Below, in pieces: positions 1 through 20,446 of a stretch of 64,000 nucleotides of DNA (position 1 is the stretch's first letter; each line of letters starts with the position of its first letter). This stretch comes from Schizochytrium sp. TIO01 (lineage: Eukaryota; Protista; Bigyra: Labyrinthulomycetes). Location: assembly GCA_004764695.1 (NCBI GenBank), contig SMSO01000025.1, positions 5,062,862-5,126,861 of the forward strand. Reading direction: 5' to 3'. The notes beneath the pieces were generated by a model. That model saw only the letters and a list, made by a program, of their open reading frames with translations. It made no database searches and had not been told where the DNA came from. The position numbers were made by a program, and so were the translations under genes.

Positions 1-759
1 AAGCAATTGTGATATGCAGGAAGAAGGAAAAAAAGAGAAAGAACCCTTTCTTTCTAAAGTTCTTTTCAGGTGTGTTTTTTCAACCAGGTGGTTGGATATT
101 TATTGTTATGTATTGTTGTTTGTTTTATCTGCAAGGAACGCCGGTTCTCTTCCTTCTCTGCGCTCTTTCCCTTATTTCGACCCAAAAGCTCAGCATTGGA
201 CAGCTCAACCGGTCTACTGTAGCTCCCTCATCAAAAGCGCGCGGGCCGATACCATTATGCTTTCATTGGCTCCGCAGGCACCATTCCGAAGAAGGCCAAA
301 CAGCCAGCGCTAGGTCCTTATTACCTGCCTATGCACTCTCGTCCATTTACTATATGTTGTTTTAAAGTTAAAATAAATATGTGTTTAGAGGCCGTTGTTT
401 TCAACAGTACTTTTATGTAAAGTAATAAAAAGAAAAAAGTAAGTTTTTAGTTTGTTTTGTACACATACATACATACATACATACATGTACGGTGGATGCT
501 TCCATGGCAGGGAAAAAACAGAGGAGTCTCTCGTATGCATGCATATAGATATATGTATGTATAAACAGAGGAGCCCTTCGATATTCATCTTCGTTTCTAA
601 CGCTTTTTATTTTATTTGGTTTCAAAACTAGCTAGCGGATAAGTAAATATTCATTCAAAGTAGCCTAAAAGACTAGTGAGTACCTACTAACTATCACGGG
701 CGCCGTGAAAAGATACAGAAGGAGGAACCTTTCTTTCTGCCTTTGTCTCTCCCTCTGTG

Positions 760-760
<1 letters not shown>

Positions 761-856
<96 letters not shown>
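761..856. repeat. (ATCT)n microsatellite
   Basis: Perfect tetranucleotide run; explains the spurious SIYL ORFs. Confidence 0.97.
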
Positions 857-1327
857 CTGGCTCTGCCTGTGGACAGAACTGCTTGCCCAAGGCGACTGAT
901 CTCGAGCCTCGCGCTTTCCCTCTCCGGGCACCTGTCGGCTTTTCGAGGCCCGCAGCAGAAGAAGCAGCGGCAGGAGACCAGCTCGAGGCAGTTTTGTTGT
1001 TCGAATCAAAGGCAGCAAACAAAGCAAGAGATTAGAAAGAAAGAAAGACATGAGAAAGAAAGAATGAAAGAGTGGTTGCTCCATTTAATTTTAATTTTAA
1101 TTTTTTCATTCATCCATTCACTCACTCATTATCTTCTTAGTTTTTGGCTTGATCGGGGAGACGGTGGTTTTTACGCTGCGGCAAAGAAACCAACAAACTG
1201 AAAGGAAGGTGGCGAATGCAAATGTTTGTTTTCGTTCGTTCATAGAGAAAGAGAAATGAAAGAAAGCAGAATAAACTCATTCTTCCAGCGCAACGAAGGC
1301 GGAGCAAACGCGATATAATAATACTAA

Positions 1328-1368
1328 ATGAATGAATGAATGAATGAATGAATGAATGAATGAATGAA
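1328..1368. repeat. (ATGA)n microsatellite
   Basis: Direct reading. Confidence 0.9.
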
Positions 1369-2036
1369 TTAGAGTAGAACCAAGAGGAAGATGCCTCATG
1401 AAACGAGGACAGCGCCGCAAATAAGCAGTCGAAGCTTCACTACCGAAGAAACGAGCTTTAGCTTTCTTGAAGCGCTCACTCACTGCCTCGGGCTCAGTGC
1501 TTTGTACCTTTCACTCGCGAAAGAGTGGACTTGAACGCAGAAGTGGAAAGGAATCCCCGCTCTTCGGAAGGTTTCGTTTGATTTAGTTCTTTTGAGTTGC
1601 AGGCTGAAGAGAAGAGAAGAAGAAGAAGGTAGAATACCACTAGGCATGCAGACTAACCAACCCAGTAACCAACTAAGTAGCTAACTAACCAACTAGCTAA
1701 CTAGCTAGCAATCCAACTAAGTAATTTTTAGTTTTAGTTTAAAAGAAGGATGAAAAAGAAAATACTTTACCTGTAAAGAGTGTAAAGAGGAAAAAGCAAG
1801 CAAGTTTAAGGCCTTTGGAGACACCATAAAAGATGAGAGGACCAGAACTTACAATAAGCAGAAAGAAAAAAGACAGAAGGAAGTGACCCTCGGCTACTAG
1901 CTAGCTAGGGGTGTGTAGAGAGGTACCTAATGTCGAGCCAGAAAAAGCCAAGATAAAGATAGTCATACTTAGCATAATCAACCAGCTAAATTAAACTAAA
2001 TTTCATTCTTGAAAGGAATCAATTATAAAAGACTAA

Positions 2037-2068
<32 letters not shown>

Positions 2069-2256
2069 ACGCATTCATTCATTCACTATAAAATGATAAC
2101 TTACGTAAAAGAATCAGAATAGCAAACATTTGAAAAATCAAAGCAATTCAAATCAAAGCAGGAGAGGCGGAGGAGGACGGCATCCAAAACCGCATCACGA
2201 ACTCGCAAGGTTGACCTTGAGATAAGGTTTCGAGGAGAGACAAGAGCGAAGACAAG

Positions 2257-4671
2257 ATGAGCACCAAGAAGGTGTACAAGGGCCGCTCATGGGTCACCCA
2301 GCCCGGCGAGTGGGAGCAGGAGAAGCACTACTACCCGCGTGCCCTCAACGCGCAGCTCCATCCGCTGGTGCAGTCGTTCATGTCCCTCGACAAGAAGCGA
2401 CTCGCCATGCGCTACTGCCACCTCCACCCGGAGGCGAACCAGGAGAAGCTGCTCGAGGTCCTCTCCTACAAGCCCGCGTTCTTCAAGTGGAGTGGCGCTG
2501 ATCTCTTCTGCGTCACCAACGAGAGCGCCAACCGCCAGATGATCGTCATTGAGACCAACAGGTAAGTCAACGCAAAACATACAAACAAGCAACGAGGACA
2601 CGGATTTGAATCATCGTCGCCATTCGAACCATGGTAATATTTATTAGCAATTCCTCTTGCATGGCCTGCTTCTTCTTCCTCTTCCTTCTGTTTGATATCT
2701 ATCTGGCCAGATTCCTTTCTTCTCCACTTCATTGATGCTCGCCGGAGAATCGCATCTAGCACACAGGGGCTCTCGTGGACGCGGCGAGCCGTGCAGGTAC
2801 AGGCCACCAGGGCGGGGCTGTCGGTGCCGCGATGACGATGGCGAGATGCGTGGAATAGCGAGAAGCAAGTGAATCTGCGCTGCGGAATACATATGTATAT
2901 ATGTATATCCTTTGTCAAGTTTTTTTTTTTTTTCTTCTTCTCTCGCGATTCTAAAGATACAAAAAATAAAGCTTTTGAGCGAACGAGAAGAAAGCACGGC
3001 GGCCAGTTCTTAGCGGTCGCGCGCTAGGGCTGTGTCGATTGAACAGCAATGGCGAGGAGGGGAAGGGAACAGCAGCAGCAACAGAAAGGCTTTTAGGAAG
3101 ACTTGAGGGACCTGATTTGAAGACGCAGACTATGACTAACATTTAGATTGGAGTTCTTCTCCTCCTGATTATCTTTGCTCATGACACAGCTGCCCCAGTG
3201 GCCAGAAGTCCATGCCTGTGGCCGGTTCCACCGAGACCGAGTCCAGCAAGGATACCGGATACTACCGCATGATCTCTGAGACCTTTGGCCCTCTTGTCAA
3301 GGAGAAGGAGGCTGATCTCCCTGATGGTGTTTTTGCTGTTATCTTCGACAAGAACCCCATGGAGGCCACCGGATACGCTCAGTGTAAGTTATTTCTCTTA
3401 ATTCTGCACTTCAGCTTGTCTGAAGAGCACACACGTTGAAATACGTGGTAAACCCAAACCTAAACTGGTTATAGATAGACTAACCATCGATATACCTGGC
3501 GATCATACGAAAATCTTATTGCAATCGGGAAATACAAATGATAACAGGCATGAGCGATTACCTTGGCAAGTCTGTCTTTTTGATCGAGTTTTTCAAACTC
3601 GACCCGAACCCACCTGCTAAATGGACTGTGGACGGCGTCCTCTTGATCCGCGTCAAGAAGTCTGAGCTCCAGAAGCACTACCCGGAGAAGGTCGCCCTTG
3701 GCCAGCCTTGCAAGGACCCGGAATATGCCCAGGACTACGTATGGGTTCCCGTCCGTGCTGCCTTCCGCTACGTGACCATTGCTCCCTGGAGCCGCATCCC
3801 CATTGTCACCAAGACCCTTGTTCTTAACCCAATCATCTCCTGCCTCAGTGGTGGTCGCAACAAGCTTGTAGCCAGCAAGTCATACGACTTCCTCAACGCT
3901 GAGCTCGCTGAGTTTGGCTTGAACATTCGAGCCCCCGAGACCATTAGTGACGTTTCCTTGACCGAAATTCCCCTGTACCTTAAGGCAATGGGCTATGTCG
4001 GTGTAATTAAGGTCCCTTACAGTAATGCTGGTCAGGGTGTCTTCACAATTACCTCCAAGGCTGAGCTTGACGAGTTCATGGAGTGGGCCAAGGACACTAT
4101 CTACGATCAATACATTGTTCAGGCTCTTGTTGGTAACTCCACCTGGTCTAGCCGCTCCAACAATGGAACCTTCTACCACGTCGGTACCATCCCTAACACC
4201 AAGTACCGCATCTATGTTGCCGATGTTCGTATGATGATTTGCGCTACCGAAGATGGCTACCGTCCCTTGGCCATCTACGCCCGCCGTGCCGCAGAGCCTC
4301 TTGCAGAGACTCTTGATGGCTCCACCGCCTCTTGGAACATGCTCGGAACCAACCTTTCCATTGCCAAGGCTGATGGTACCTGGGATAGTGACACTGGCCG
4401 TCTTCTTCTCATGGACCGCAAGGATTTTAACAAGCTTGGTCTCTCTGTTGATGATCTTGTTGATGGTTTCATCCAGTGTGTCATGGCCTCGACTGCAATT
4501 GACCAGATGTGCAAGCGTCTCCTCAAGAAGGACAACTTCGACAAGGAGCTCTTTTCTAGTCTCAACAAGGATCCTGGTTTCATGAGTGAGGTCATTACTC
4601 TCGAGGCTATCAAGGCCGCTCGCGAAGCCGAGGAGGCTGCGGACGCGGACTCCGTCCCCAAGGAGGCCTAA
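2257..4671 (+). CDS. Circularly permuted ATP-grasp amide/peptide ligase, uncharacterised family; join(2257..2561,3190..3383,3548..4671), 540 aa
   Basis: Three ORF fragments join in frame through canonical introns (GTAAGT at 2562 and 3384; CAG acceptors ending 3189 and 3547). Splicing restores GADLF...IETNSCPSGQKSMP (D..ExN metal motif). Later motifs are VIKVPYSNAGQGVF, YIVQ and ADVRM. ExN before the K..GxG loop is the permuted order seen in eukaryotic glutathione synthetase and glutathionylspermidine synthetase. Confidence 0.8.
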
Positions 4672-6513
4672 ACCAACAAGAGTTTGTCTGATCAAATGGA
4701 ACTGAGGGACTGCGCGTCGTACAATCCCGGAAGGGATAGTTCTAGCTCTAGGTCAAAAATCCCGTTGCCCCACACGCACATCTCTGTGATACATATGGTG
4801 AACAAGATTCACTAATCTACATACGATCTATGGTCTGCCACACACAAATTCACACAAAATGCAGGCTATTTTTCAAACTCCATTGTCCTTGAGCTCCATC
4901 GCAAAGGTTTCTACATTACCCACAGATTACCCACGCATTTCTAATCACCGGCGCTCCGGTAGGGTACGAAGCCGAGACGAAAAGACTGTCTCGTCGGCGT
5001 GCCATGTTTTCATCACACGGGAATTAATTACGTCACATTTTAAGCCCTGCCACTATACTGCAAAATCAAAAATGCTATTCTTTTAACCTTCATCTCTCTC
5101 ATCTTGCATGTGTGCACCGTCCGGTCGGCCCATCTTTGTCAGTATCTTATCTTGAGACCGCTTTGATTTGACGAACCCCGTTGAGATTTTTTTCCCTCTA
5201 ATTTTCACAGGTACTTACAAAACCATATCTCATATCACAATAGTAATATTTGTTGAAATGGAATAGATAATAGCTCGTCGCAGCTTTTTGTTCTAAAAGC
5301 ATCATAGCTTTGGTAGTCACTGGCCATCCCTAATACCCCTGCACATTATGCTATCTCTCAGAAGTCTTCGTATCTTTTGGTCTAGTATATGGCTGTGTCT
5401 TTGCCTAATCTTCGATTATAAACGAGCCTGACAATATAAAGAAGTGGTTCCAGTATTTCTCCAAGGACCCGTTTTCGACTCTTTCTTTTTAACCTTTTCA
5501 ACAATCAGGCGGAGCTCCGCATTCACTTCCGACTGTCTGAGACTCGCGGCAAAAGGTCAGTCTCAACTCGCAAGGCTACAGATTCGTTCCCGAGTAGAGC
5601 GTACTTCCGTGAAGAAACCAGCTCTCAGAGGCGAACTTAGATTACAAAATTTCATTTCGCCATGTGCACACCCCTGAATTCCTGTATATATATCCTCCCT
5701 CGAGGACATGGTGCATTCGAGCGAGGGTGGGATCTTGAGTACGTATAGCTTGCCCTCAATAGCATAATAAAAGAGCAGAGTATCTAAAAAAACCATTTGT
5801 ATGATTTCAATTCTTATGGAGAATGTAGAAACGAAGAATTTCAGGTTTTAGACGAACGGAGTGCCCAGGCTAAACCCAGAAAACTTTGTATAGACTTTAT
5901 ATGAAATAAAAGTAAGAAAAGGATATCGATGACTGCTCTTTGAGGAAGTAGAAGACCAAAAGTTGAACATTGCAAAATGTTGCGATGGGTTCTCAGGAGC
6001 AAGAGACTTCAGCATATTGCATCGAAGTGAAAAGGAAACTTTTCAAGGGTAATTTAAAAAAAATTAAAGAGAGGTATTCAGAAAATAAGATAATCTCAAA
6101 TTCAACGGTAGTTATCGACGTGTCAAAAAAATGAAGAAAGAGCAAAAGGCACACGGGAGTTCTTCTTGTTGATCTGCAGATAATGCTTAATAAGACCGCG
6201 TGCAGAAAATTGGTATTGCTACTCTTCACAATGCATTAGTGCTTTCCAAGGTAGAATTTCGCTTGGTTAGCATGTTCAGAATAATACTGACAAAAGGATA
6301 GAGTCTCTCTATCAATGCTGCTCTGCTTTGATATTTTGCTTTCAAATGATCATCATTGCCTTGGTCGCCCGAATTGGTTTCATTGAAGTGTCCAAAGTGC
6401 TAAACAATGATATTTCTTCTCTCTAAAATAGAAGATTATATACGCCAGCAAAAGAATGTTTGAACTATTTGGGGACATAGGAAACCAAACAGTCATACTG
6501 AGCGATGGGGCGT

Positions 6514-8370
6514 TTAGGTGTGTCCGTCATCAACCTTGCCCTTGGGGAGTTCATCCTCGACATAGCCCAGGTGGATGATACGGTCACCGGCGGCGCAAAT
6601 GGGGTTGGTCGACTTACCAACCACGATAGCATCAGCCGGGGCCTTGAGGGTGTACACAACGTCACCAAAGAGGTTCTGCACAATGGCAACAATCTCACCC
6701 TGAGTCACCCAACTGTTGACCTCAGGGCGCACACGCAAAACACCACCTGCCGGGGAGTAGATCCACTTGGATCGAGCACAAATGGTTGTCTTGGTGTGGA
6801 GGGGGTTTACACTTCCACGGCGGACCATGGAGCGGCGCTTGTGTGGAGAAGGCGGCTTGGTAAGCGGGGAGAGGGGAGGGGGCGGGGACCCCTTGGCAAG
6901 CTCCATGAAGCTGTCAACACTACTACGCTTCTTGAGCTCAAAGTCACTTTCGCCCGATCTAGTGCCAAGAGGAGCGAGGGGAGGAGGGGGTGAAGAAGCG
7001 TCGAGCGTGAGTTCCTCACCAAGGTACTTTTCGTCGAGAACCATCTCTTCCTCTTCATCATCACCAGCAGGAGGTTCGTCTTCTTCGTCACCAAAGCTCT
7101 GAATATCAAGCCAACGCATGACATTCTCCACACCATAGAGAGCAGAAGACACAAAAGTGTTGTGGAACACAAGAGGGTCACCAATCTCTACAGTAATACT
7201 CGGGATACCCAGAGCCATGGCTGCAGAACGGAGGGAGCCGTCAGGTGCTGTGTTGTGGACAATAATTTGAGGGTGCTGGAGAAGCGCCATCTCGTGACTC
7301 ACAGGGTGGCGCATGTCGGCACGCACGTAAAGACTGTTCTTGCGGCCAAAACTGGCCGTGTGCATATCGATGTGGTAATCGAACTTCTTAATAATCTTTT
7401 CCAGCACATGGTGTACATAGGTCTGACCGCAGTTACCCTCGGCCTTACCGGGGAAGAGACGGTTGAGATCCTGGCCGTCATGGAAGCCACGCTGGCGACG
7501 TTGGTAACCGGGAGGGTTAAGAACAGGAATCGAAACGACAGTACCCTTCATGGTATCAACATCGATCTCACGGAAGAGACGGAAGATGAGGGGAATACCG
7601 TTGAGCTCGTTACCATGGAGTGCGGAGGTGATACCAAGGACAGGTCCTGCAAAGCGGCCCTTAGCTACAGTGACATGAATAGTGATATAGTCACCAAGTT
7701 CGTTGGGCACGAGAGCAAGCTTGAGGCGGGTAATCTGGCCAGGAGGCAAGGACTCAAGAGCAAGCTCAGAGAGCAGAGGCACAGGCTCATCAACCTCGAG
7801 CTCGTTGAGGCGCTCAACAGCCTCGCTCTCGTCGTACTGAATCTTCTCGTTGGAGCCCATGAGGTCATCGATCTCCTTGTGAAGCGCGTCGAGGGTTTCA
7901 CCATGCTTAATACGAGACTGCACGACACGCTCAGAGAGCTTCTCAAGAAAAGCAATAATTTCGGGGGGTGAGTCATCTTCGAGGTGCTTAAGAACCTTCT
8001 TGAGAAGCTTGTTCTGACCTTCGTGGTTGATTTCGTTGTAGCGTGCCAAGCGCTTCAGCGTAAGAACCCACTTAAGCTGGAGCTCATGGTCCGGCTCAAG
8101 GCCAGCCTCCTGAAGCCTTGCCGCATCAGCCTTAATCTTGGTGCGAATCTGCTGCACCTGACGTTTAAGGTGTCCATCGATCTTGAGCACCTCGCGCTTC
8201 CACCGCGGCTTGAACTCCTCCATAAAGTCATTCACCATCTTGAAGCGGCCGAAGGAGTCAATGTGAGCATTGAGAAGCTGCTTGAGCTCCTTGTACTCGA
8301 GAAAAAGGTCAATCCATTTCGCATTCCACGAAAGGTTCTGCTCAAGGCGAATAGTCTTACCAAACTTCAT
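6514..8370 (-). CDS. SPX-domain / M14 succinylglutamate desuccinylase-aspartoacylase (AstE/AspA) family Zn hydrolase fusion, 618 aa
   Basis: N-terminal SPX signatures MKFGK...W...LEYKELK and YNEINHEGQNKLLKKVLK. M14 motifs LHGNE, DLNRLFPG, IDMHT and TVEIG. C-terminal SPAGG...GEIV...APADAIVVG...GDRIIHLG is the barrel-sandwich hybrid domain typical of AstE/AspA proteins. Confidence 0.9.
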   Translation of the reverse strand: MKFGKTIRLEQNLSWNAKWIDLFLEYKELKQLLNAHIDSFGRFKMVNDFMEEFKPRWKREVLKIDGHLKRQVQQIRTKIKADAARLQEAGLEPDHELQLKWVLTLKRLARYNEINHEGQNKLLKKVLKHLEDDSPPEIIAFLEKLSERVVQSRIKHGETLDALHKEIDDLMGSNEKIQYDESEAVERLNELEVDEPVPLLSELALESLPPGQITRLKLALVPNELGDYITIHVTVAKGRFAGPVLGITSALHGNELNGIPLIFRLFREIDVDTMKGTVVSIPVLNPPGYQRRQRGFHDGQDLNRLFPGKAEGNCGQTYVHHVLEKIIKKFDYHIDMHTASFGRKNSLYVRADMRHPVSHEMALLQHPQIIVHNTAPDGSLRSAAMALGIPSITVEIGDPLVFHNTFVSSALYGVENVMRWLDIQSFGDEEDEPPAGDDEEEEMVLDEKYLGEELTLDASSPPPPLAPLGTRSGESDFELKKRSSVDSFMELAKGSPPPPLSPLTKPPSPHKRRSMVRRGSVNPLHTKTTICARSKWIYSPAGGVLRVRPEVNSWVTQGEIVAIVQNLFGDVVYTLKAPADAIVVGKSTNPICAAGDRIIHLGYVEDELPKGKVDDGHT

Positions 8371-9831
8371 CCTGTCAGAACGCTTTTGTTGCTGTCGACG
8401 CTAAACAGCTGCACACCTCGACCTTCGCTCAGTTGTGTGTTTGCTGCTGCAACTAATATTACGTTACTTCTCGCAAACTAACGCAACTGCAATCAATCTT
8501 ATCACACTGCCGTGTATTGCAATATAATTCAATGCAATGCAATACAATGCGAATGCAGATATACGGAAATGCTCCCCAAAAGACTACGGATCTCTCTTAT
8601 CCTCTCTGCGTGATCCAAACCCGACGCGAAAGTACAAAGTAAGCATAAGGAAAGCAGGTTAGTCAACAGTAAACAACTCTCGCAACGTTGTGGTTGCCCT
8701 GGCCCTTCACGGGCTGTCGAGCAGTCCCTCGCTCGCTCAAACAGGCACACCAGAAAGCCGAGGCAATCAATTGCAAATCAATTAGTTCGACTTTCAATCA
8801 AGCACCTGAAAAGACAAGCGCTCTGCTTCAACGGATTCCGCCGCCAGGCCTTCTCCGAGGCTCCAGGCGGCAGGGAGCTCGAGGTCGAGGAGATCACGGC
8901 CACACCAATCCAATCCGATCAAGGCCAACATGAGACGGGGAACTTACGCAGGTAGAGACCACGCCGTGCAGGCGAGGGAGGGCAATCCGAAGTAATACAA
9001 GATAGCAGTCTGCTGCGCCTTTTTTGGTTGACCTTCGTTTGCTGATCCTAACATTAAAAATAAAGCAGATCTTTCTCCATCTTTTCTACAATAGATCTTC
9101 TCCCTCTATATAATAAGGGAAAACCATAATGCATCAAAAGCCTTTTCACCCTTTCTATTTAATTAAAAGAGGATTTTTGTTTTTTAATCTTAATTTAAAT
9201 TATATAATAATGTAGGATATCTACTGTTTCCCCATAGGATTTGATATTTATTTAATATTATAGTTATTGTTAATTTTTTTAATTAATAAAAAAAATAGCT
9301 TGAGGATGTGGCAACTTGAACAGATTGAAAAAGAAAGCAAGTAAATCAATATGGCATTATAGCCTACCTACAATCGAAGTTGAGGTTTCCTACGAAAATT
9401 AGATAATTCAAGAGGGGGGGCAAACGCGCTGTTATACGTCCTATACAGGATACTGTACTGTAGTCTGTACCACATGGTCGACCTCAAGCGCTAAAAAGGG
9501 CGCCTTTATACTCTGCTCCTGTACAAATATTCGTGTATTTATTATAACATTTATTATCTATATTTTAATTAAAAGAGAAAGATAAAAACTACAGATTGAT
9601 AGTAGTTGCTTAGAAGCTATGGTGCTGATCTGAGAAGACGTTGGGATGGTAACTTGTCGAGGCGGAATGGGTCAGTATCGCAGACCTCGCCGGGTATAAA
9701 CTCGTTTTCATAGCTGCTTGGCTCGAAAGCGGGGGGTCCACAAAATAAACAATCTTTGATTTCGCGCAGGCAAATAGGTGCCTACTTACATACGCAATCA
9801 CCGGGTCACTTTGTACATATACATAAACATT

Positions 9832-9868
<37 letters not shown>

Positions 9869-10228
9869 TATTTATTTATTTTTAAAGTATTTGTTTTTGA
9901 TAAAATAGCTTGGAAAGAAGAGACGATAAGAGATTGCATGAGATATGGCCCTTCTCTTTTCGTTTCGCTGTGGCGGTGTCTTTCAAGAGAGGCTTCGATT
10001 CCTACGCAAAACATGCAAAGTTTCACGGCGAAAGACGAAGGAGGGCCTGCTTTGAACCTCCTGTCAAAAGGCGTTCTGTCTTCGCACAACGGCCAGCAGC
10101 ACTGTGTCGTCTTCGCGGAAGTAGAGTATCATCATAAGATTACATTGTGTTGGATTGTCGTTACGCTCTTCGTTATCTTATCCTATGACTTTATTAAATT
10201 AAAAAAAAAAAAAAAAAAAAAAACAAAA

Positions 10229-10264
<36 letters not shown>

Positions 10265-10337
10265 ACGTGGTGCCTTTCCACATAAAATAACTTTAAAATG
10301 AGACTTTCCAGCAGTACGTACAGTACTCTGTTTTATT

Positions 10338-10497
<160 letters not shown>

Positions 10498-13400
10498 TTT
10501 TATCCATTGATTAAACTAAAGTTATTCATTCATCCACAGAGAACGAAGTTTTAAGCTGAGGAGGGAAAAGCCAAAAGAGAGAGGATCGATTGAAAGGAAA
10601 GAAAGCGCCCAAAAGCAAAAGTACGGCGCCACTCGTAATCGCAATCGAACGATTCTCCGCAGTTCTTGGCATGCCTTATGCACCCAAAGAGAGAACCTAT
10701 CAAAGCAAGCAAACGCATACTCAGATCGATCGATCGATGTAGCCTCAAAGAGTGGTTTGTTTCTATTATCCCAAAGATCATTCATTGATTTTCATTCACC
10801 GACCCATCTGCTCCTAGGAGACCCAGCTAGCCAGAACTCTTATGCAACAGTTCCGCGGCAGTGGTAGCGATAGGCCTAGTCGCCGACTAGCGTGGGGCCA
10901 GTAGCCGCGAATAGGCAAAACCCTAGGGGCGCCTGCCGCTATATAATAACGTGCGGCACGCGACAAAGTAGAGCCGGAAGAGGCGCCCTTCGGCTCTGGG
11001 CCCGGCTTCCTCGCGCAGAAGCCGGCGGCGGCCCATCGCGCTGCCGGAGAGCCCCTCGCGAGCTCCGCGGGTCGGCACCTTCCGGCTGGGACGATCTCTC
11101 GGGCGGCCGCGGAGGCAGAGCTCGAGCGAGGAGGGAGGCCTGATCTGACTTACTTGGTTTCTTGATCTTTCATTCCTCTTTTACGCTATTTAACAAACTT
11201 CGCTCTTTTTTTTTTCCTTTTTTTTTTTTTTTTTTTTAATAATTAAAATGCTGTTTGTTATGGCTATAGGACTGAAGGAAAGAAAGAAAGAAAGAGAGAG
11301 TTAAAAGAAATGATGAAAAGACATGTGCCGCGAAGAAAAAAAAAAAAAAAAAAAAAAAAAAAGCGAGCCTCAAATAGAGGTTACTTGAAGCAGCGCCAGG
11401 CAAGTGTTGATTGAGATAGCTGGGCTTGGAGATGGCCACGGGGCGACGCAGGAGACGCGGGATCAGGGAGTTCGACACGTAGATATGGGCGGCTGTGAGG
11501 TGCGTGGAGCGACGGGATAGAAACTCCTGTCTCGAGCAGATAGAAGAAGAGGGCGCACACACAGGCTGTGATGAAACCTGCTAAATGTCACGAACGGGGG
11601 TGTTTGACTAACTTACGGGGAAGAATTACAGGGTTTACAGGAGTCTGCGAAAGGTCGAGATTGCACGCGAGGAAAGCGATGCGACAGAGGTCGAAGATCA
11701 AGGCTTGGAGGCCAGAGGAGGCGTTAGAAGGCACCCCGAAGATATATGCGAGGGCGGAGGTGCCATGTGCAGCAAGAAAATGCCCTCCACGAGACTCCGG
11801 TGGCTCAGTTTGACGATGCTTGCGAGGGAATCACGGCATGACCGTGGTGTGCAATACAGCCGTGGGACTAAGGCTGGTCAGCACGTGAAGATGTGCGCAA
11901 CATGAATAGACAACAGCGGGGTTGAAAGCATAGAACTGAAGATAACTGGCCCTACTCAGACGAGGTCTTTACTTGATCAGCACGTGCAGTGCAAGTGGCA
12001 TTGTATTTGGCCGATTTGGGGGCAGGCTGGTGCATTGTATCGATGTGATGCATGCCGCTCGCCGGGGCTTATTCTAAAGATGTCTTTCTTAGCTAGGTGT
12101 GCACTTACTCTTATGCATTATGACGATTGATTGAATGATTGAATGATTAATTGGTTGACGAAACATACTTGGGCTCAATACCATAGCCCGCATCCGGGAG
12201 GGTACACTGCCTGGTCAGAGCTTTCACTGGTATCTATTTGATGATGCAATGATGGTTCTCGAACTTCAATCAACCAGAGCATTTCGCATTCTGTGAATAA
12301 CCTGCGTTGTTGTGAGAAAGTATGACGCATGGTAGTGTAATCAACTACCAGCACTGCAGACCTGGAAAAAAGTTTCCTTGGATTGTGCATAGTGAAGAAA
12401 AGGGCTAAGTTCACACAAGCAGACAAAAGTGCTCAAGAGGAAGCAAAGGCTCGATTTACGTTGAGTCTACTCAAGTCAAGAGCTTCAAACTGCTGCTGCC
12501 AGTACATATAGAGGGAAGAGTTCCCAAAAATGATTTTTATTTATGACTATCAACAGGACAACTAAAAGTAAAAAGAAAACATATTCCACTAAGTACGGCT
12601 TTGCCTTCATAAGTAATCACATGCCTGTAAGTGAGAAAGAAAGAGAGGCTATCGAGAAATACACTGAGCAAACAGAGTCAAAAGTCGCGACTTTATTCGA
12701 TAGAATGGAAGCGAAGTGGGCTTACAGAATGTTGCACCCTAATTATCGCAAATGCAAGCAGTTTGTGGGATAGGGTGTTACTGCGTGGTCCTTGCAGAAA
12801 GCTGGACGTTGGGTAGTTGCGTGCTGCTGAGAAAGACAAAGCGTTAGATACTTCAATATTTCAATTGTATTTCAATTCGAAGCTTCCTCGAATGAACTAT
12901 TCTAATTCGAAGAAACTGACCCTTATCATATACAATGTGTAGTAGCTAAGCCTATCTTTGGCTTAATTAGACTTATCATGATTTCAATCTTTTTTTGTTT
13001 TTTGTTTGTTAAAATTTTAGAGCTTTCCTAGCTATTGTAGATTTTGGCTTTTAAAAGAAAGGTTCAACCACGGACTCCTAACTTTGCTAGAACTAAGTTC
13101 CTTTCCGGACAAATGCCATGGGATCTTTAAAACTACAAAGCTTTTCTGAGAACACTACGTCTTGTCTGCTCAAATTTTCCATAATGGAAAGAAGTTCTCA
13201 GACAGCATTCTGCACGTGATGCTATGCACATGAAAACAGGATAAATGCGCAACTCATCCCTGTAGTGATCTCACCGTGCTTCTCACGACCGGCACTCTAC
13301 ATACCCAAATTAGGTTTGCTTTCGTGCGCTAAACAATGAAATTGCATGCAGACAGAGATAAATATAAATGAGCCCTCTAATCGACATGAATTAAAGCAGT

Positions 13401-14012: not shown

Positions 14013-17000
14013 ATGAGCGTGCGCGTATACGAGGTCGTATACACGAAGCAAAAGCAACAGAAGCGCAAGGTAAGTCCATGCGACAAGCACCGGGCACTGT
14101 GAGGTACTCAATACTGACAACCACTGGGAGCTTGGCACACCGAGAGGGTGATGCTGACAATATTGACGATGGCTAGAGATGGAGCGATGGGTTCGTGAAA
14201 GTCTCAGCGGAACGCAAGAAGTTGATTCTCTATGCTGCTAGCGAAGAGCAGCCTGGTCCAGAGGTCGCGCTGAGAGGTCGCGTGCTTGACGAACTGTTCG
14301 TGCAGGACGTGGAGAACCTGGAGGAGGAGATTGAGTTTGAAAAGTTCCTCGTGGAAATTGGTTCCCGCGTTCACTTTGAGAGTGCAGTGATCTCAACAGA
14401 AAGTACTGCAGGCGCTGAGAATGAGCAAGTCTCTGCAAAACAAACCCCAGCTAAACCTAGTATGACTGGCTCTCAGCGAGGGTTGCGACAGCAACCTCCT
14501 CTTTTCTCCGGATCACTGCGAAGACCAACGATTTCAAATCAATATTGCAGCCAAAGCCGAAGTGAGAAGTGCCATCAAGAACCTCAAGACTTCGTCGGGA
14601 GGTATAGACCAATACCTCCATCGTCAATCCCAGTCGCAACAGAGCCTTCTCAGTTGCGAGGCAATTCACTTGCAGCAAGGGGATTTCAACGCAACCGTCT
14701 TGGAGCTGCACTTCCAGCTTCGACTCCTGCTCAAGGCTCATCGAGAGGGCAGGAGAACGTGACAAACTACATACCGGAAGCTACTAAAGAAGCCCCGCGA
14801 AACATTATGCCAAGGATGGCTATGCCAGGGCCTTCTGGGACGACATGCACATCAGGCGACCTTCTTGAGCTGATGGGGTTCGAAGAACCCTCAAGTGTGG
14901 ACGAAAACAAATCTAATCTTTCCAATGCAGACCCTCCTTCCCGCTGTACCGAAGAAGAAGTGGTAGATTCGCCGATAAAACCAAGCAAAATGGATTTTAA
15001 GAATGCGCGTTCTATTCCTGCTCCTGTACGTGGCGCTTTCAAGAAACCAAGGTCCAACGGAACACCAAGCCCAACACCTTTGGCTAAGCCACGTCCTGTT
15101 TCAAATAATTCACAATCCAATGACAGCACCGCGAGTCGCATTAACAAAGGCCCATCTTCAGGTCCAAGATGCTTTCCCCAAGACCTTCTACCTGAAGGCA
15201 CGCTTCGCCTTAATCTTCGATTTCGACAGACAGGACCCTGGGACACGAATCGTAAGATTTTTCACCAATTGCCCTCTGCGCATGCGTCTAGTGCTGAGCA
15301 TATGCATAATTTCCAGAGTACCTCTATAGCCATCATGACAGAAGAAATCCAAGCAAGTCTCGATGATTTCTTTGAGTTTCTCTCTAGAACAGGACCCCAG
15401 CGAACACAGGCTCGATATGATGAAAAGTGCACGCTGTACCGGACTCAGCCCAAAAGTGCACAGATGCAAAGGAAGTTCAAAAAGAAAGGCAACAAGTCGC
15501 GTGGAGGCTATAGCAAAAGAGGAGACTATGATAATACTGCTGAAGCCGAGGTTTTGGAGGATGACGAAGACGATAGTGATGAAGATGGGGGTCCTGTGGA
15601 CGAAGTCAAGAAGCCGCGCATTTTTTTAAACTCAGCTCGTTTACGAGAGAATCATAATGCGCGCAAGGCTTGCCGTTATGGCGATCTATGGTTTGTATCA
15701 CGAAACCCATTCTTCTATGGTAATGGCGAGAAAGAAATCGAAGTTTGGATCTTCCAATCCGTGTGGCATGGGCCAACTGCAGAAGGTGTACTCGAGGTTG
15801 TTCCGATTTCAGAAAACTTTGATCCACGTCGTGTATCCTCAAATTGGCAGCACAAAACTCGAGCATATGCTTTGTTTGGGCCCAACTTGGATCACAAGGT
15901 AGCCATGGCTCGTGTACTCACCGAGATGGGACCACATAGCCTGCCCATATACCCCTCTCTTGTTCTACCTCAGGCGCGTTTACAGCCGGCTAAAGGGATG
16001 TTCCCAGGGGATTCTCGTGCAAAAGAAATTTCTGAGTGTCTCTTTGAGCAGACGGTAAAGGATTTTCAACTTAATGAAGATCAAACACAGGTGCTTCGAC
16101 AAACACAAAAGTGGTTGACAGCTGAGCAAGCAGATCCTGTTGTACTTGTACATGGTGCTTACGGCTCTGGTAAGACACAATTGTCTGTGGCTACTATTAT
16201 GTATCTCACCAAGGTCTTGGATACCTTGGGTGATCAAAGCTTTCGCATTTGTGTTGCTGCTGCGACAAATGTCGCTGTCGATAATGTTCTCAAAGCATTG
16301 AAGCGTCGAGGTTTCCTTGCATTTAGTCGTGTTGGAAGCATTCGTAATATGGATCAAGAGCTTCTGGAACATATATTGCACTATAATGAACGTGGCCTTG
16401 CTGCCGCTGTGCAGGAGGCGCGCACGCAACTCTCTGAAATGATGAATAGTGACACAGGTTCTTCTGCAGGGTTATCGGTTGATCAGTCAACGACCTCGCA
16501 ATCGCGAAGACAAGCCACTCAAGCAATTAGGAAAGCTCTTCGCCATCTGGAGCACACCGCCTTACCAAAGCTCGCCAAAGAGCAACAAGAGCGCGAGAGC
16601 TCATTTCGTGTGGTTGGTGTAACGTGTTGTAGTGCCTCTCGCAATTATCTAATGCAAACGTTCGAGAAACCAGGTGTCCGCACAATTTGTCTTCTTGATG
16701 AGGCAGCTCAAGCAGTGGAGGCTCTTACCATGCTTCCTTTGGTCCGTAGCCATGCAGAGTTTGCAATGATGGTTGGCGACCCGTTGCAACTACCTCCTGT
16801 GACAGCGACCCGTGGAGGGAATTCTAAACTTCTTCAAAACAACACTGTATATGCAGATGGAGCAACATCATTATTTGAACGACTGAGCCGGCTTGGTCGA
16901 GATCCGGTTCGTCTCACGGTGCAATATCGTTGTCACCCGTCCATCAGTGATATCTCGAGTAAACTGTTTTACGAAAGTGGCGTGCGCACTGGCATTACTG

Positions 17001-17566
17001 CAGGAGACCGCCAAGCCTTAGTCGCGGGCCTTCCTGCTGCTGGATTTTATGACGTTGCACAGACTCACGAGATGCGTACTGATAATGGGTCCTTTGTGAA
17101 CGATCGTGAACAGACCTTGGTATGTATGATGGTTCTGAAACTTGTTGAAGCAGGAATTCGTCCGGAGCAGATTGGTGCGATTGCATTATATCGAGCTCAA
17201 GCTTTGGCTATCGAAAAAAGGCTGGATGAGAGCGGCCGTGCTCATGGGGTTGCCGTATCAACCGTGGATGCTTTCCAAGGTGCAGAACGAGATATCATAA
17301 TTATTTCGACATGCAGAACTACAGGCCCGGGATTCACAGCTTGCCCACGACGTGTGAATGTAATGATTACAAGGGCACGGCACCACTTAATGATTTTAGG
17401 ACAGCATTCTGCCTTATCTGGGTCAAAGCTCTGGCGAGATGTACTGAAGGAGTGCGAGACCAACGTTCCCTTGGAGGCGGTACTTGAACGCCTGGCTGAT
17501 GCTGCTCAAGAGGCAATGTATGAGCCGGATGAGGATGAAGAAAATGAAGCAGCCGCGTTTCTGTAA
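14013..17566 (+). CDS. ZGRF1: ZGRF1-like Upf1/DNA2-type SF1 helicase with N-terminal DUF2439-like domain; join(14013..14069,14177..17566), 1148 aa
   Basis: Exon 1 MSVRVYEVVYTKQKQQKRK is followed by GTAAGT (14070), with a TAG acceptor ending 14176, giving ...KRKRWSDGFVKV...KLILY (DUF2439 pattern). Helicase motifs: HGAYGSGKT, ATNVAVDN, LDEAAQ, GDPLQLPP, QYRCHP, STVDAFQGAE, NVMITRAR. Confidence 0.8.
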
Positions 17567-18070: not shown

Positions 18071-20446
18071 TTAAAGGTCTGAGTAGTCAATTACGGTGCG
18101 AAATTTGCGAGGCGGGGCAGGGGCATTGGAGGACAAGTTGTCTTTGGTGCCAGACGGTCCATCAGGTCCATCGCCAAAGTGAGCCTGATAATAGGAACGA
18201 TCCTTAGGCTTTGCGTATTCGGGTATTGGCGGAAGCGGCTTGTCATCAGCTTCAAGGAACTCCTGGCGAACGATTTCGCGAACAGCCTTGACGCGAGCCG
18301 CATTAACGTGCTCCGCCTGTTTTGTGCGGATGTGCTTGTGCACGAATGACTCTGATGCAAAGCGTTTAAACGGAGGGAGCAGGCATCGGTACTTGCCTTT
18401 TTCCTCAAAGCGTGTCTGTGATTTGCAAAATTCTTCCTCAGCTTCGTCCATGAGCTTTTGTGCGCGCTCAATCTTTGCTGCACGTGCATCGCGCTCCGCC
18501 TGGACCTTTTCGGGTTGGAAGCGCTCGAGCCAGGAGGTCACAGCCTCATCGACGTTGCGAAGGTAGGTGGATTTGCGAGGCTCAAGAATCTCCTTGAGCG
18601 CAGCAATGAAGGTGTCTTCATCTGCATCGGCTCCGGTCTTTTCTTTCGCAGCCTCAATATCTGCCCAACCGGTCTTGAGTATGTCATCTCCAGGAATGTG
18701 CCGCAGGTACGGCAACATATTAAGCTGGATCATCTCTCCTTGGGAAACATACATGCGATGTCCGTAGTAGCAGGTAAGGTGAACGTGGCGAAGGTATCCA
18801 ATGATAAGATCGAGTTCTCTGCGCTGACGCGCAAGCTCACGGTCCTTCTCACTGACAGCAGCGCTTTTGTTTCCCTCGTCAGCGTCGTTTTTGTTATTAC
18901 TGGCGTTGTCTTCATTGTCTTCATTGTAATCGTTACTGCCAGACCGCTGGGAGCTAGTCTTGGTACCGGCAGAGTTGAAGGCGTCTTCCAGAGCCTCCTG
19001 CGCAGCAGGCGCCTTGAGGAAAGCATCGAGGCCGTCTTCGACCCTACGTGCCTGGTCAAGAATGTGAGCTACAGCACGAGCCTGTGCAAGATCAATTTTG
19101 ATACGGGCTGGACTGGATACCTCCTTAAAGGCAAAACGGTTACCCAATAGGCGTCGCTCTAAAACAGTAAGTTCAACTTCCTCAGGATCCGCTCCTGGCG
19201 TCGTTGGTGTGGCCTTCGCAATAACTTTGCCCTCCACTCGCAGGGCCTCCGCGGAATCTTTGCTGTCAAAGACCACCCAGGCGTCCCTGTTAAAAAGGTT
19301 CCGGCCACCACTCTTGCGCGAGGCTGCTGCTCCCGCCGCTGATGCTGAAGACGACATGGATGACGACCCTCCTGCAGCGGAAGACTGTTTCTCCAGGAGT
19401 AGGGGTTCTCCCACAAGGATCTCGAGGTCCGTAGAGATTTCTTCCCTGGGGTTCTCGGAATCTGTATTCTTAATCTTTCCAAGAGTTTCCTTGACGGCAG
19501 TTGTCAAGGAGTTTGTCGTAACTGAAGGCGGCACCCTCGGGATAAATACCACAAACTTGTCGGCGAGAGGGTCTCCAACAGCCTTGCCAATCTTTGCCTT
19601 GCGTCGAGGCTCTGGAACCGCGTCAAGTACAGGGCAAACATTCTCAAGATCAGCTATGCCTTTCGCATCCCGAAGTCGCGCCGCTTCCGCTGCTGCGTGT
19701 TTTTCCAAGCCTTCTTCGAGTGCCTTGACTCGGGTAACGTCGTACCTACTCAAGAACCACTCTTCGGCACCATGCGCCTCAAAGTATTCGCTCGCTGCTT
19801 TGGCTTGCCATCCTTCCACGTACGCTTGATACCCTGATTCTGATACTGGCAGACGGTTGTTCTCTTGCTGTCTCGCCCACGCTGAAAACGACCACAATGG
19901 ATCCACCTCACGTCCATCGCTGGTTGTCGCAGATGCTCGATCTCCCAAACCGCTTCCATGTCCATTCCCACGCTCAGAGCCGCGGTCTCCTCGGCGCCGC
20001 TTGGATGCCCTACCTCCGCTACGACTTCTCCTCGAGGAGTTCCTCATCGACGATCTTTCTCTTGAAGGACTGCGCTGTCTTCTGGAGATCCTCGACCATG
20101 ATCTAGATCTGGATCTGGACCTGCGTGAGTCTCCTCGTTGGTCTCGAGTATCACGGTTGTCCCGAGAATCCCGATGATCGCGAGAGTCACGATAGTCTCG
20201 AATGTCTCTAGAGTCCCTGGAATCCCGAGGATCATTGTCACCTCTGCGCTGGTGGTGGTAGTCTCGACCGTGCCTCCGCTGCCGTGCAGGTGGCGACCGT
20301 GAGGACCTGCGGCGCCGCTGTTGGTGCCGGTTGCGTCTGGAGGAGGTCGCAGAAGAAGCTGAGTGGCTCCTTGAAGAAGCTGAGGACCCTGCAGAGGGGC
20401 TACGGCTTCGCCGCCGCGGCGAAACCGACCCGTCGCGAGACCTCAT
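18071..20446 (-). CDS. SRRT: SERRATE/Ars2 RNA-processing factor, about 791 aa from the first ATG
   Basis: RS/RD-rich N-terminus; YFEAHGAEEWFLSRY (DUF3546-like); RRM-like middle region; LDLIIGYLRHVHLTCYYG; zinc-finger-like KYRC...F...FVHKHI; C-terminal RTVIDYSDL. Confidence 0.85.
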   Translation of the reverse strand: MRSRDGSVSPRRRSRSPSAGSSASSRSHSASSATSSRRNRHQQRRRRSSRSPPARQRRHGRDYHHQRRGDNDPRDSRDSRDIRDYRDSRDHRDSRDNRDTRDQRGDSRRSRSRSRSWSRISRRQRSPSRERSSMRNSSRRSRSGGRASKRRRGDRGSERGNGHGSGLGDRASATTSDGREVDPLWSFSAWARQQENNRLPVSESGYQAYVEGWQAKAASEYFEAHGAEEWFLSRYDVTRVKALEEGLEKHAAAEAARLRDAKGIADLENVCPVLDAVPEPRRKAKIGKAVGDPLADKFVVFIPRVPPSVTTNSLTTAVKETLGKIKNTDSENPREEISTDLEILVGEPLLLEKQSSAAGGSSSMSSSASAAGAAASRKSGGRNLFNRDAWVVFDSKDSAEALRVEGKVIAKATPTTPGADPEEVELTVLERRLLGNRFAFKEVSSPARIKIDLAQARAVAHILDQARRVEDGLDAFLKAPAAQEALEDAFNSAGTKTSSQRSGSNDYNEDNEDNASNNKNDADEGNKSAAVSEKDRELARQRRELDLIIGYLRHVHLTCYYGHRMYVSQGEMIQLNMLPYLRHIPGDDILKTGWADIEAAKEKTGADADEDTFIAALKEILEPRKSTYLRNVDEAVTSWLERFQPEKVQAERDARAAKIERAQKLMDEAEEEFCKSQTRFEEKGKYRCLLPPFKRFASESFVHKHIRTKQAEHVNAARVKAVREIVRQEFLEADDKPLPPIPEYAKPKDRSYYQAHFGDGPDGPSGTKDNLSSNAPAPPRKFRTVIDYSDL

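Follow-up and report, generated by a model that had tools for sequence, protein, structure and literature searches.

Why should a ligase of the ATP-grasp superfamily and a zinc hydrolase carrying an SPX domain lie tail to tail in the genome of a thraustochytrid? The locus belongs to Schizochytrium sp. TIO01 and is contained in a stretch of 64,000 nucleotides (positions 5,062,862 to 5,126,861 of contig SMSO01000025.1; hereafter the window, always meaning the whole stretch), which sits on contig C24 of a 64-Mb genome of 37 contigs. Gene A (2257-4671, + strand) encodes the ligase and gene B (6514-8370, - strand) the hydrolase, and their stop codons are 1,842 nt apart. Our answer, which we hold to be fairly probable, is that the pair represents, in eukaryotes, a conserved module that makes and breaks one amide under the control of phosphate.

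An initial annotation of this DNA had described a circularly permuted ATP-grasp ligase on the forward strand and, about 1.8 kb away and convergent with it, an AstE/AspA-type hydrolase with an N-terminal SPX domain. Each element of that description is borne out by the models, profiles and invariant residues presented below, while its suggestions about the product of the pair fared less well and are taken up where the function is discussed.

Linkage of the two families

The bacterial sample comprised 80 species loci carrying the ligase, from Saprospiraceae and other Bacteroidota, Rhodothermota, Myxococcota, Cyanobacteriota and Chloroflexota, together with one bin labelled Alphaproteobacteria and one labelled Asgard. 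In 63 of the 80, no more than 10 kb separates the ligase from a hydrolase homologue (45-52% identity); among the loci with full flanks this is the case in 36 of 43, typically with the hydrolase about 1 kb downstream on the same strand. The usual bacterial order is ligase, GshB-like ATP-grasp, hydrolase, where the GshB-like gene is a match to PF02955 and reaches 137-252 bits against glutathione-synthase models, under their equivalog cut-offs. As for genomes in which the genes are not adjacent, a hydrolase orthologue, 62-73% identical to that of locus L005, was found elsewhere in three of five.

Co-occurrence was assessed in an even sample of 201 Bacteroidota genomes, with an orthologue-grade hydrolase defined by at least 54% identity and more than 415 bits. 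The ligase is present in three of these genomes and the orthologue-grade hydrolase in exactly the same three, an overlap with a chance of about 1 in 1.3 million, and a further 58 genomes hold hydrolase paralogues only (at most 33% identity). The initial annotation had stated that such gene pairs occur in bacteria and had named the absence of linkage or co-occurrence in advance as the outcome that would speak against it; what was found is recurrent adjacency and complete co-occurrence.

The ligase and hydrolase trees share their topology, in that both unite labyrinthulomycetes with plasmodiophorids, keep the fungi together and join Rhodothermales with Phormidesmis. Fungi and SAR (stramenopiles, alveolates and Rhizaria) stand on one side of a supported branch in both trees (SH-aLRT 98 for the ligase and 89 for the hydrolase). 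In the eukaryotic homologue lists, which consist of the best 120 matches, at least 21 genera among the matches listed carry both genes. Operon adjacency, exact co-occurrence, congruent trees and shared eukaryotic genera strongly support the conclusion that the ligase and the hydrolase are functionally linked. A recent transfer of the operon into thraustochytrids was considered and rejected, as both genes nest within eukaryote-wide groups of their trees.

Some loci depart from the common arrangement. One Saprospiraceae genome has two tandem GshB-like genes with a hydrolase (G003:C38:14573-17295), with its ligase locus (L062) lying apart and without partners. The metagenome-assembled genome labelled Promethearchaeota (L075, 10001-11410) contains the ligase and a GshB-like gene, and no hydrolase was found in the 3.8-Mb genome of this Asgard-labelled bin, for which mis-binning is possible. 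The same Bacteroidota genomes also contain a second, paralogous pair in which a RimK/GshB-like ATP-grasp gene adjoins an AstE/AspA paralogue (G148:C22:183982-185532; G002:C45:203989-205524; G001:C15:64889-66387; G196:C1:980218-981701). This paralogue is 27-29% identical to the operon hydrolase, AstE/AspA paralogues at similar identity (up to 33%) being found in 58 of the 201 sampled genomes, and the second pair is probably the pairing of RimK with a deacylase that had been named beforehand.

The ligase: fold, permutation and family

The exons of gene A were searched one by one, and the full-length fold was predicted on the orthologue from the closely related Hondaea fermentalgiana (P0002, 533 amino acids), which is 89% identical over exon 3. 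In the AlphaFold model of P0002 (predicted local distance difference test, pLDDT, 88; predicted TM-score, pTM, 0.90) the product is clearly predicted to be a three-domain ATP-grasp enzyme. Its best structural match is 3k1t, a structural-genomics entry labelled 'putative gamma-glutamylcysteine synthetase' (Z 15.9 over 327 residues), and LysX/ArgX, D-Ala-D-Ala ligases (Ddl) and RimK follow with Z scores of 12-14; the alignments cover 215-327 residues. The top Foldseek matches are Cp1B, an epoxysuccinate-amino-acid ligase of E-64 biosynthesis (PMC12568646), together with 3n6x, GspS, YgiC/YjfC and eukaryotic glutathione synthetases.

The ranges of these alignments bear on the order of the parts. 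Classical ATP-grasp enzymes align to P0002 only at about 148-485, through their own residues from about 1 to 230/250, while the permuted enzymes (glutathione synthetase, GspS, YgiC/YjfC and 3n6x) align with it from about residue 20 to 457. E99-T-N101 sits in an N-terminal hairpin of the model (strands 78-87 and 93-101). Polekhina and colleagues reportedly described, in 1999, human glutathione synthetase with its Mg-binding E-x-N strand at the N-terminus. Since the alignment ranges and the N-terminal place of E99-x-N101 fit a moved strand, the model supports a circular permutation in which the putative Mg-binding strand has shifted from the C- to the N-terminus. E99, N101, K320, G327-Q-G329, D391, R393 and N434 are invariant in 35 ligase sequences, as is D455. 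The conserved ATP/Mg set is thus present (the Lys of the K-x-P strand, the Gly-rich loop, D-x-R, N and E-x-N), with roles assigned by analogy.

By sequence, the family stands apart. Neither the exons nor six full-length homologues match any Pfam model, including PF08886 GshA and the CP_ATPgrasp_1/2 models, so that the ligase is not a member of those families; its connection with PF08886 GshA consists of structural similarity and a feature score of 0.91 to a protein atlas cluster. The best NCBIfam score, 13 bits where the cut-off is 143, is to RimK, and no solved structure was found by sequence in the Protein Data Bank with either the single sequence or the 35-sequence family profile. More than 3,600 homologues exist, all labelled 'hypothetical' and typically of about 480 amino acids; they span Saprospiraceae, myxobacteria, Rhizopus, Batrachochytrium, Plasmodiophora and thraustochytrids, and bacterial and eukaryotic members are about 50% identical. 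By fold the family is ATP-grasp, but in sequence it is new.

A few homologues have unexpected hosts. Those from the lycophyte Diphasiastrum and the moss Sphagnum (P0096 and P0108) nest among bacteria in the tree, and those from the sciarid flies Pseudolycoriella and Bradysia (P0323 and P0358) nest within Mucorales; these could be horizontal transfers or contaminated assemblies.

The hydrolase and its SPX domain

Gene B is a single open reading frame of 618 amino acids (6514-8370, - strand; stop codon 6514-6516), and its product is 82% identical to the Hondaea orthologue. The model of the protein (pLDDT 81) consists of a helical N-terminal domain, a disordered linker, a catalytic domain, a disordered insert and a C-terminal beta-domain. 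The AstE/AspA (M14-like) zinc-hydrolase catalytic domain covers residues ~200-428 (7087..7773, - strand). Pfam AstE_AspA_cat (PF24827) matches residues 242-419 (E=2e-33; 115.8 bits against a cut-off of 25), and H252, E255, H337, E395 and R304 are invariant in 32 homologues. These residues align with the motifs HGDE, DINR, DMHTA and TELG of 3cdx, by which H252, E255 and H337 are the predicted zinc ligands, E395 the predicted general base and R304 the predicted carboxylate-binding residue.

The nearest solved relatives are 3cdx, 2qj8, 3na6 and DoeB/EutE (TMt about 0.8 to DoeB and 3cdx); CphZ-type beta-Asp-Arg dipeptidases (TMt 0.67) and CCP5 resemble it less closely. The protein scores far below every equivalog cut-off for DoeB, AstE and aspartoacylase (DoeB TIGR02994, 47 against 403; TIGR03242, 27 against 306; NF002601, 20 against 180), and we assign it by these profiles to AstE/AspA and to no characterised subfamily. 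With such scores, the label 'EutE' on the Hondaea orthologue is unjustified.

The C-terminal beta-domain of the AstE/AspA fold occupies residues ~521-618 (6517..6810, - strand), where the strands between 529 and 603 are modelled with pLDDT above 90; tblastn alignments to bacterial hydrolases cover residues 520-608, and the domain aligns structurally to DoeB and 3cdx. It is separated from the catalytic domain by a disordered, acidic and proline-rich insertion of about 90 residues (429-520; 6811..7086, - strand; pLDDT 31-43), which is a gap in most homologues and confined to labyrinthulomycetes and a few other eukaryotes. The same genome has four further AstE/AspA loci (C31:305740-306309, C33:3812860-3813516, C33:4572871-4573152 and C30:3266577-3266924), some in open frames of 650-1,030 amino acids, which may be other domain fusions.

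The SPX domain corresponds to residues 1-170 (7861..8370, - strand) and was recognised by profile matches to solved SPX domains, alignment to XPR1 and the structural model. A profile of six labyrinthulomycete orthologues matches the SPX structure 5ijj over residues 1-165 (E=2.5e-10) and Vtc4 at 6e-6, and a profile of 32 hydrolases matches XPR1, Vtc3/4, SPX1/2 and Pho90 at 1e-18 to 1e-11, with XPR1 at 1e-18. Precomputed annotation places PF03105 on most of the hydrolase homologues listed. In the model, residues 3-170 form three short and three long helices with pLDDT above 90.

The features expected of an SPX domain are a start of MKFGK, Y26 and K30, and K121-x-x-K124-K125-x-x-K128; in 32 sequences K124 is invariant and Y26, K30, K121, K125 and K128 are at least 90% conserved, and the lysine cluster aligns to RKILKKHDK of XPR1. 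The roles of such Tyr and Lys residues in ligand binding are said to have been established by Wild and colleagues in 2016. Judged by these residues, the putative basic ligand-binding surface (Tyr/Lys on helix 2 and K-x-x-K-K-x-x-K on helix 4) appears intact. The SPX-AstE/AspA fusion is widespread, occurring in plasmodiophorids, Cafeteria, chytrids, Mortierellomycotina, Kickxellomycotina, Basidiobolus, Pneumocystis and Saitoella.

SPX domains are sensors of phosphate status that take inositol pyrophosphates as ligands. The genome of the window also encodes a Vtc4-like SPX-VTC protein and has at least seven other SPX loci, which indicates that it possesses an SPX signalling system. From the domain composition of the hydrolase it is reasonable to infer that the enzyme is controlled by phosphate, and no link of the catalytic domain itself to phosphate chemistry is apparent. 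Known outputs of inositol-pyrophosphate and phosphate signalling are transporters, polyphosphate synthesis, a phosphodiesterase, kinase inhibitors and transcription regulators; a full-text literature search found no paper on a combination of SPX with M14 (aspartoacylase or succinylglutamate desuccinylase).

Polyamine genes around the bacterial operon

At 21 of the 80 loci, the bacterial operon has polyamine genes joined to it or close by. The set consists of a SpeA-like decarboxylase, an agmatinase (above the TIGR01230 cut-off) and a gene resembling deoxyhypusine and homospermidine synthases. In five loci (L032, L038, L040, L045 and L073) these genes stand inside the operon, in the order LIG-ADC-AGM-DHS-c13-GSHB-HYD; they follow it in L054, L057 and L067, and are divergently upstream of it in L005, L012, L019 and L028. 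In the Rhodothermales loci L043 and L064 they adjoin the ligase on its upstream side and are read from the other strand. This context points to a tie between the bacterial module and metabolism leading from arginine through agmatine and putrescine to homospermidine. A full-text literature search for papers linking an ATP-grasp enzyme with polyamine, deoxyhypusine synthase and agmatinase found none.

Neighbouring CN-hydrolase genes of 507 amino acids were tried as Lnt and rejected; among NCBIfam models AguB is nearest, at 276 bits against 57 for Lnt and still below the cut-off, and these AguB-like genes were left out of the count of 21. Six loci (L045:5545-5865, + strand, and L032, L038, L040, L067 and L073) encode a protein of 106 amino acids with an acidic C-terminus (...EEFGDEKADDDE), always after the deoxyhypusine-synthase-like gene of the polyamine module. 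It has no Pfam match and recalls, by analogy, LysW-type carrier proteins or acidic-tailed RimK substrates. Divergently upstream of the Saprospiraceae operon are a 209-amino-acid protein with a DksA/TraR zinc finger (20 loci) and a split histidine kinase (12 loci), for example in L005, L012, L020, L028, L030 and L036, which may be a dedicated regulator of the operon.

Proposed function and competing explanations

In the mechanism that we propose, the ligase would convert a carboxylate to an activated acyl-phosphate at the expense of ATP and join it to an amine, for which an amino acid's alpha-amino group is the likeliest candidate, to give an N-acyl-amino acid or a short peptide-like amide. The hydrolase would cleave this amide and free the amino acid, and in bacteria the GshB-like enzyme would probably lengthen the product by one residue. 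We infer that the ligase product is the amide reversed by the hydrolase from AstE/AspA chemistry and from the small-molecule ligases nearest to the ligase in structure. To our knowledge, every characterised AstE/AspA enzyme acts on an amino acid whose alpha-amino group is acylated and whose carboxylate is free, and takes off the acyl group. Substrates of the family are N-acetyl-Asp, N-succinyl-Glu and N-acetyl-diaminobutyrate (N-acetyl-DABA). The AstE/AspA-family dipeptidase CphZ cleaves beta-Asp-Arg, and CphZ and AotO provide family precedent for the release of Arg or Lys (PMC9974463).

On account of the polyamine genes in bacteria, we favour a masked or stored small molecule related to arginine, ornithine or polyamines as the metabolite. 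This substrate class is the likeliest candidate and nevertheless a tentative one, more apt to be wrong than right. The initial annotation had instead proposed a peptide, polymer or protein tag containing Asp or Glu, which we do not favour, as the nearest ligase structures are small-molecule enzymes and the bacterial context is one of arginine and polyamines.

The SPX domain would have been joined to the N-terminus of the eukaryotic hydrolase once, early, and amide breakdown would thereby be coupled to inositol-pyrophosphate levels, through the same network that drives the SPX-VTC polyphosphate polymerase. Coordination of polycation-precursor release with polyphosphate synthesis is speculative. 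More broadly, many fungi, labyrinthulomycetes, plasmodiophorids and other protists might share a pathway in which a nitrogen-rich cation precursor is stored as an ATP-built amide, released by the SPX-deacylase and coupled to SPX-VTC polyphosphate, a pathway inherited from, or shared with, the homospermidine-wired bacterial operon; we think this unlikely.

Several observations weigh against the proposal of a phosphate-controlled amide module related to arginine or polyamines. Polyamine genes are found at only about one quarter of the bacterial loci, and these belong mostly to Saprospiraceae, other Bacteroidia and Rhodothermales, which implies few independent events. The invariant arginines of the hydrolase (R294, R304, R343, R350 and R381) would suit a polyanionic substrate (Asp, Glu or a dicarboxylate) equally well or better. 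A GshB-like gene was not found in the genome of the window, queried with the L005 protein only, so that eukaryotes and bacteria may have different pathways. As regards the SPX domain, the single hydrolase sequence scores 11 bits against Pfam SPX (PF03105), where the cut-off is 27.8, and over residues 1-35 only. To judge from the best 120 matches listed, Mucorales may lack the hydrolase, and Kickxellomycotina and Pneumocystis may lack the ligase.

Finally, the eukaryotic genes outside the Hondaea lineage appear to be unlinked, as in Plasmodiophora and nine fungi they lie on contigs of different lengths. Both Hondaea orthologues are apparently on one contig of 64,870 bp, so that physical adjacency in eukaryotes seems confined to the present lineage and Hondaea; it is either an old arrangement retained there or a secondary juxtaposition. 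Of the two-gene eukaryotic cluster first proposed, the functional link therefore stands, with at least 21 genera having both genes, and conserved adjacency apparently does not.

How well do other explanations account for these data? A glutathione-like thiol peptide pathway would make the ligase an analogue of the PF08886/3k1t glutamate-cysteine ligase, with the GshB-like enzyme adding a third residue and the deacylase trimming or recycling the product. The structural match to 3k1t, the score to the PF08886 GshA cluster and the similarity of the operon partner to glutathione synthases all agree with it, and canonical GshA (PF04262) was not found in five carrier genomes, where GCS2-type GshA was not searched for. 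It is nonetheless distinctly doubtful, given that the ligase is matched by none of the GshA models of Pfam and NCBIfam, that the GshB-like scores are under the equivalog cut-offs, and that the genome of the window keeps ligase and hydrolase when a GshB-like gene was not found there with the L005 query. Such a pathway would also leave the deacylase without an obvious role in glutathione synthesis and the polyamine genes unexplained.

Reversible protein tagging is an explanation that we find quite unlikely too. The ligase would add Glu, Asp or another residue to an acidic tail, as RimK and TTLL do, or to a LysW-type carrier, as LysX does, and the hydrolase would erase the tag in the manner of CCP, gated by phosphate in eukaryotes. 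However, the acidic protein that might serve as a target (...ADDDE, in six operons) occurs in only 6 of 80 loci and always with polyamine genes rather than with the ligase-hydrolase core, and no candidate target was seen in the window. The strong structural matches of the ligase to LysX/ArgX and RimK (Z 12-14), the presence of CCP5 among those of the hydrolase, and invariant arginines suited to an acidic substrate all fit tagging, but the top whole-chain matches of the ligase are small-molecule ligases and the closest relatives of the hydrolase (DoeB, 3cdx and 2qj8) are small-molecule enzymes.

That the genes are unrelated neighbours, adjacent by coincidence, is very improbable in the face of the bacterial adjacency, the perfect co-occurrence and the congruent trees, even though most eukaryotes with both genes appear to have them on separate contigs, the genes of the window are convergent rather than co-transcribed, and the flanking SF1 helicase and ARS2 genes are unrelated to them. 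The weakest explanation is a cyanophycin-like store, in which the ligase would polymerise Asp, Arg or a similar residue and the hydrolase degrade the polymer under phosphate control: the analogy, drawn in the initial annotation, keeps an anchor in CphZ as a structural relative (TMt 0.67; PMC9974463) and in the arginine-metabolising genes near the bacterial operon, but is highly improbable because the ligase matches no cyanophycin synthetase model (TIGR02068) and has no Mur-like domain, the hydrolase groups with DoeB and 3cdx, AstE/AspA enzymes cut a single N-acyl-amino-acid bond rather than polymers, and no cyanophycinase-like partner was seen.

Relation to known systems

The closest functional analogue of the proposed amide module is glutathionylspermidine synthetase/amidase (E. 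coli Gss, with YgiC and YjfC), which likewise pairs a ligase with a reversing hydrolase and has a polyamine link. The ligase shares its N-terminal placement of the Mg strand and aligns over residues ~17-457 (Z about 11), without detectable sequence similarity. Gss has a fused CHAP cysteine amidase, whereas the pair described here has a separate AstE/AspA zinc enzyme, with SPX added in eukaryotes; the Gss amidase frees a polyamine, whereas AstE/AspA enzymes free an amino acid with its alpha-carboxylate.

Closest to the ligase in structure is the PF08886/TIGR02049 glutamate-cysteine ligase (3k1t), which acts with GshB, and in bacteria a GshB-like gene follows the ligase in a gshA-gshB-like arrangement. 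The differences are that the hidden Markov model does not match the ligase, that the GshB-like enzyme is below cut-offs, that the deacylase is an obligatory third partner, and that eukaryotes keep the ligase without the GshB-like enzyme (as queried in the genome of the window). With the known AstE/AspA deacylases (DoeB/EutE, aspartoacylase, succinylglutamate desuccinylase and CphZ) the hydrolase shares PF24827, the H-x-x-E...H zinc site, the catalytic Glu, the DLNR Arg and the two-domain fold; it differs from them in its SPX domain, the 90-residue insert, sub-cut-off scores and an obligatory new ligase partner.

Similarly, Vtc4, Gde1, XPR1/PHO1 and Pho81/87/90 have the same N-terminal SPX domain with Tyr/Lys clusters, fused to an effector, which in the present case is an M14-like amidohydrolase. 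The TTLL/CCP and RimK/COG3608-type deacylase systems also combine an ATP-grasp writer with an M14-fold eraser, but the ligase described here is of a different, permuted family and no protein substrate is indicated.

The component superfamilies (ATP-grasp, AstE/AspA and SPX) are already known. So far as we found, the ligase family, the obligatory partnership between it and this clade of deacylases, the association with polyamine genes and the SPX-M14 fusion appear undescribed. The ligase family has more than 3,600 homologues and is yet unnamed, with no Pfam model and no paper found, and its fixed hydrolase partner makes further work well defined, since the amide that one enzyme builds would be the one that the other breaks. 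The SPX fusion would add amide hydrolysis as a new class of output of inositol-pyrophosphate/phosphate signalling. If the metabolite is related to arginine or polyamines, the pair would constitute a molecular link between stores of nitrogen cations and of phosphate, relevant to oleaginous thraustochytrids and Mortierella, to the plant pathogens Plasmodiophora and Synchytrium, and to the animal pathogens Batrachochytrium and Mucorales.

Gene structures, transcripts and surroundings

Transcript evidence came from contigs of four public runs from four studies (X1, X2, X3 and X5). Their label as RNA was a guess, and since the contigs are spliced the runs do derive from RNA; the RNA ends taken from them are approximate only. 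Both genes are transcribed and both ligase introns are confirmed by spliced contigs in the four runs.

Exon 1 of the ligase (2257..2561, + strand) begins with the ATG at 2257 (Met1) and ends two bases into the Ser codon that follows ETN, with a donor GT at 2562, and matches P0002. It encodes the N-terminal beta-hairpin with the invariant E-x-N, the candidate Mg-ligand motif, whose role is assigned by analogy and not by coordinate superposition. The motif ETNSCPSGQKSMP straddles the first exon junction. Intron 1 (2562..3189, + strand; 628 nt, GT..AG) is removed at the joint 2561|3190 (cut +4) in contigs of all four runs. Exon 2 (3190..3383, + strand), from SCPSGQKSMP... to ...GYAQ, is followed by intron 2 (3384..3547, + strand; 164 nt, GT..AG), whose joint 3383|3548 is likewise present in all four. 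Exon 3 including the stop codon (3548..4671, + strand) encodes the ATP-grasp core with the VIKVPYSNAGQGV loop, ADVRMM, GTNLS and LMDRKDF. The whole exon model is collinear with P0002, including ETN|SCPSGQKSMP and GYAQ|CMSDY.

The 3' untranslated region of the ligase extends approximately over 4672..5676 (+ strand); X3 record 18, a spliced contig that begins in exon 1, extends to 5676, and X5 record 23 reaches 5414. That of the hydrolase covers approximately 6071..6513 (- strand), according to X3 record 19, which starts at 6073, and X5 record 24, which starts at 6071. The convergent transcripts thus end about 0.4 kb apart, and no gene was seen among the open reading frames and transcript contigs between the stop codons at 4671 and 6514. 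Contigs of low depth retain the intron across 2532-3215. A single contig of 3,999 nt (X1 record 7; window positions 4572-8400) bridges the entire intergenic region, which could reflect read-through, overlapping transcripts or carry-over of DNA in that run.

Beyond the pair lie a gene for a superfamily 1 (SF1) helicase (14195-17566, + strand; AAA_11/AAA_12, Upf1-like) and a homologue of ARS2/SERRATE (18071-20452, - strand). Positions 1-12000 of the window have no Rfam family match and contain, besides genes, only microsatellites, of which two long and perfect ones flank the pair as (TATC)x24 at 760-856 and (CAAT)x39 at 10342-10497. The first of these repeats gives rise to a spurious open reading frame of repeated 'YLSI'.

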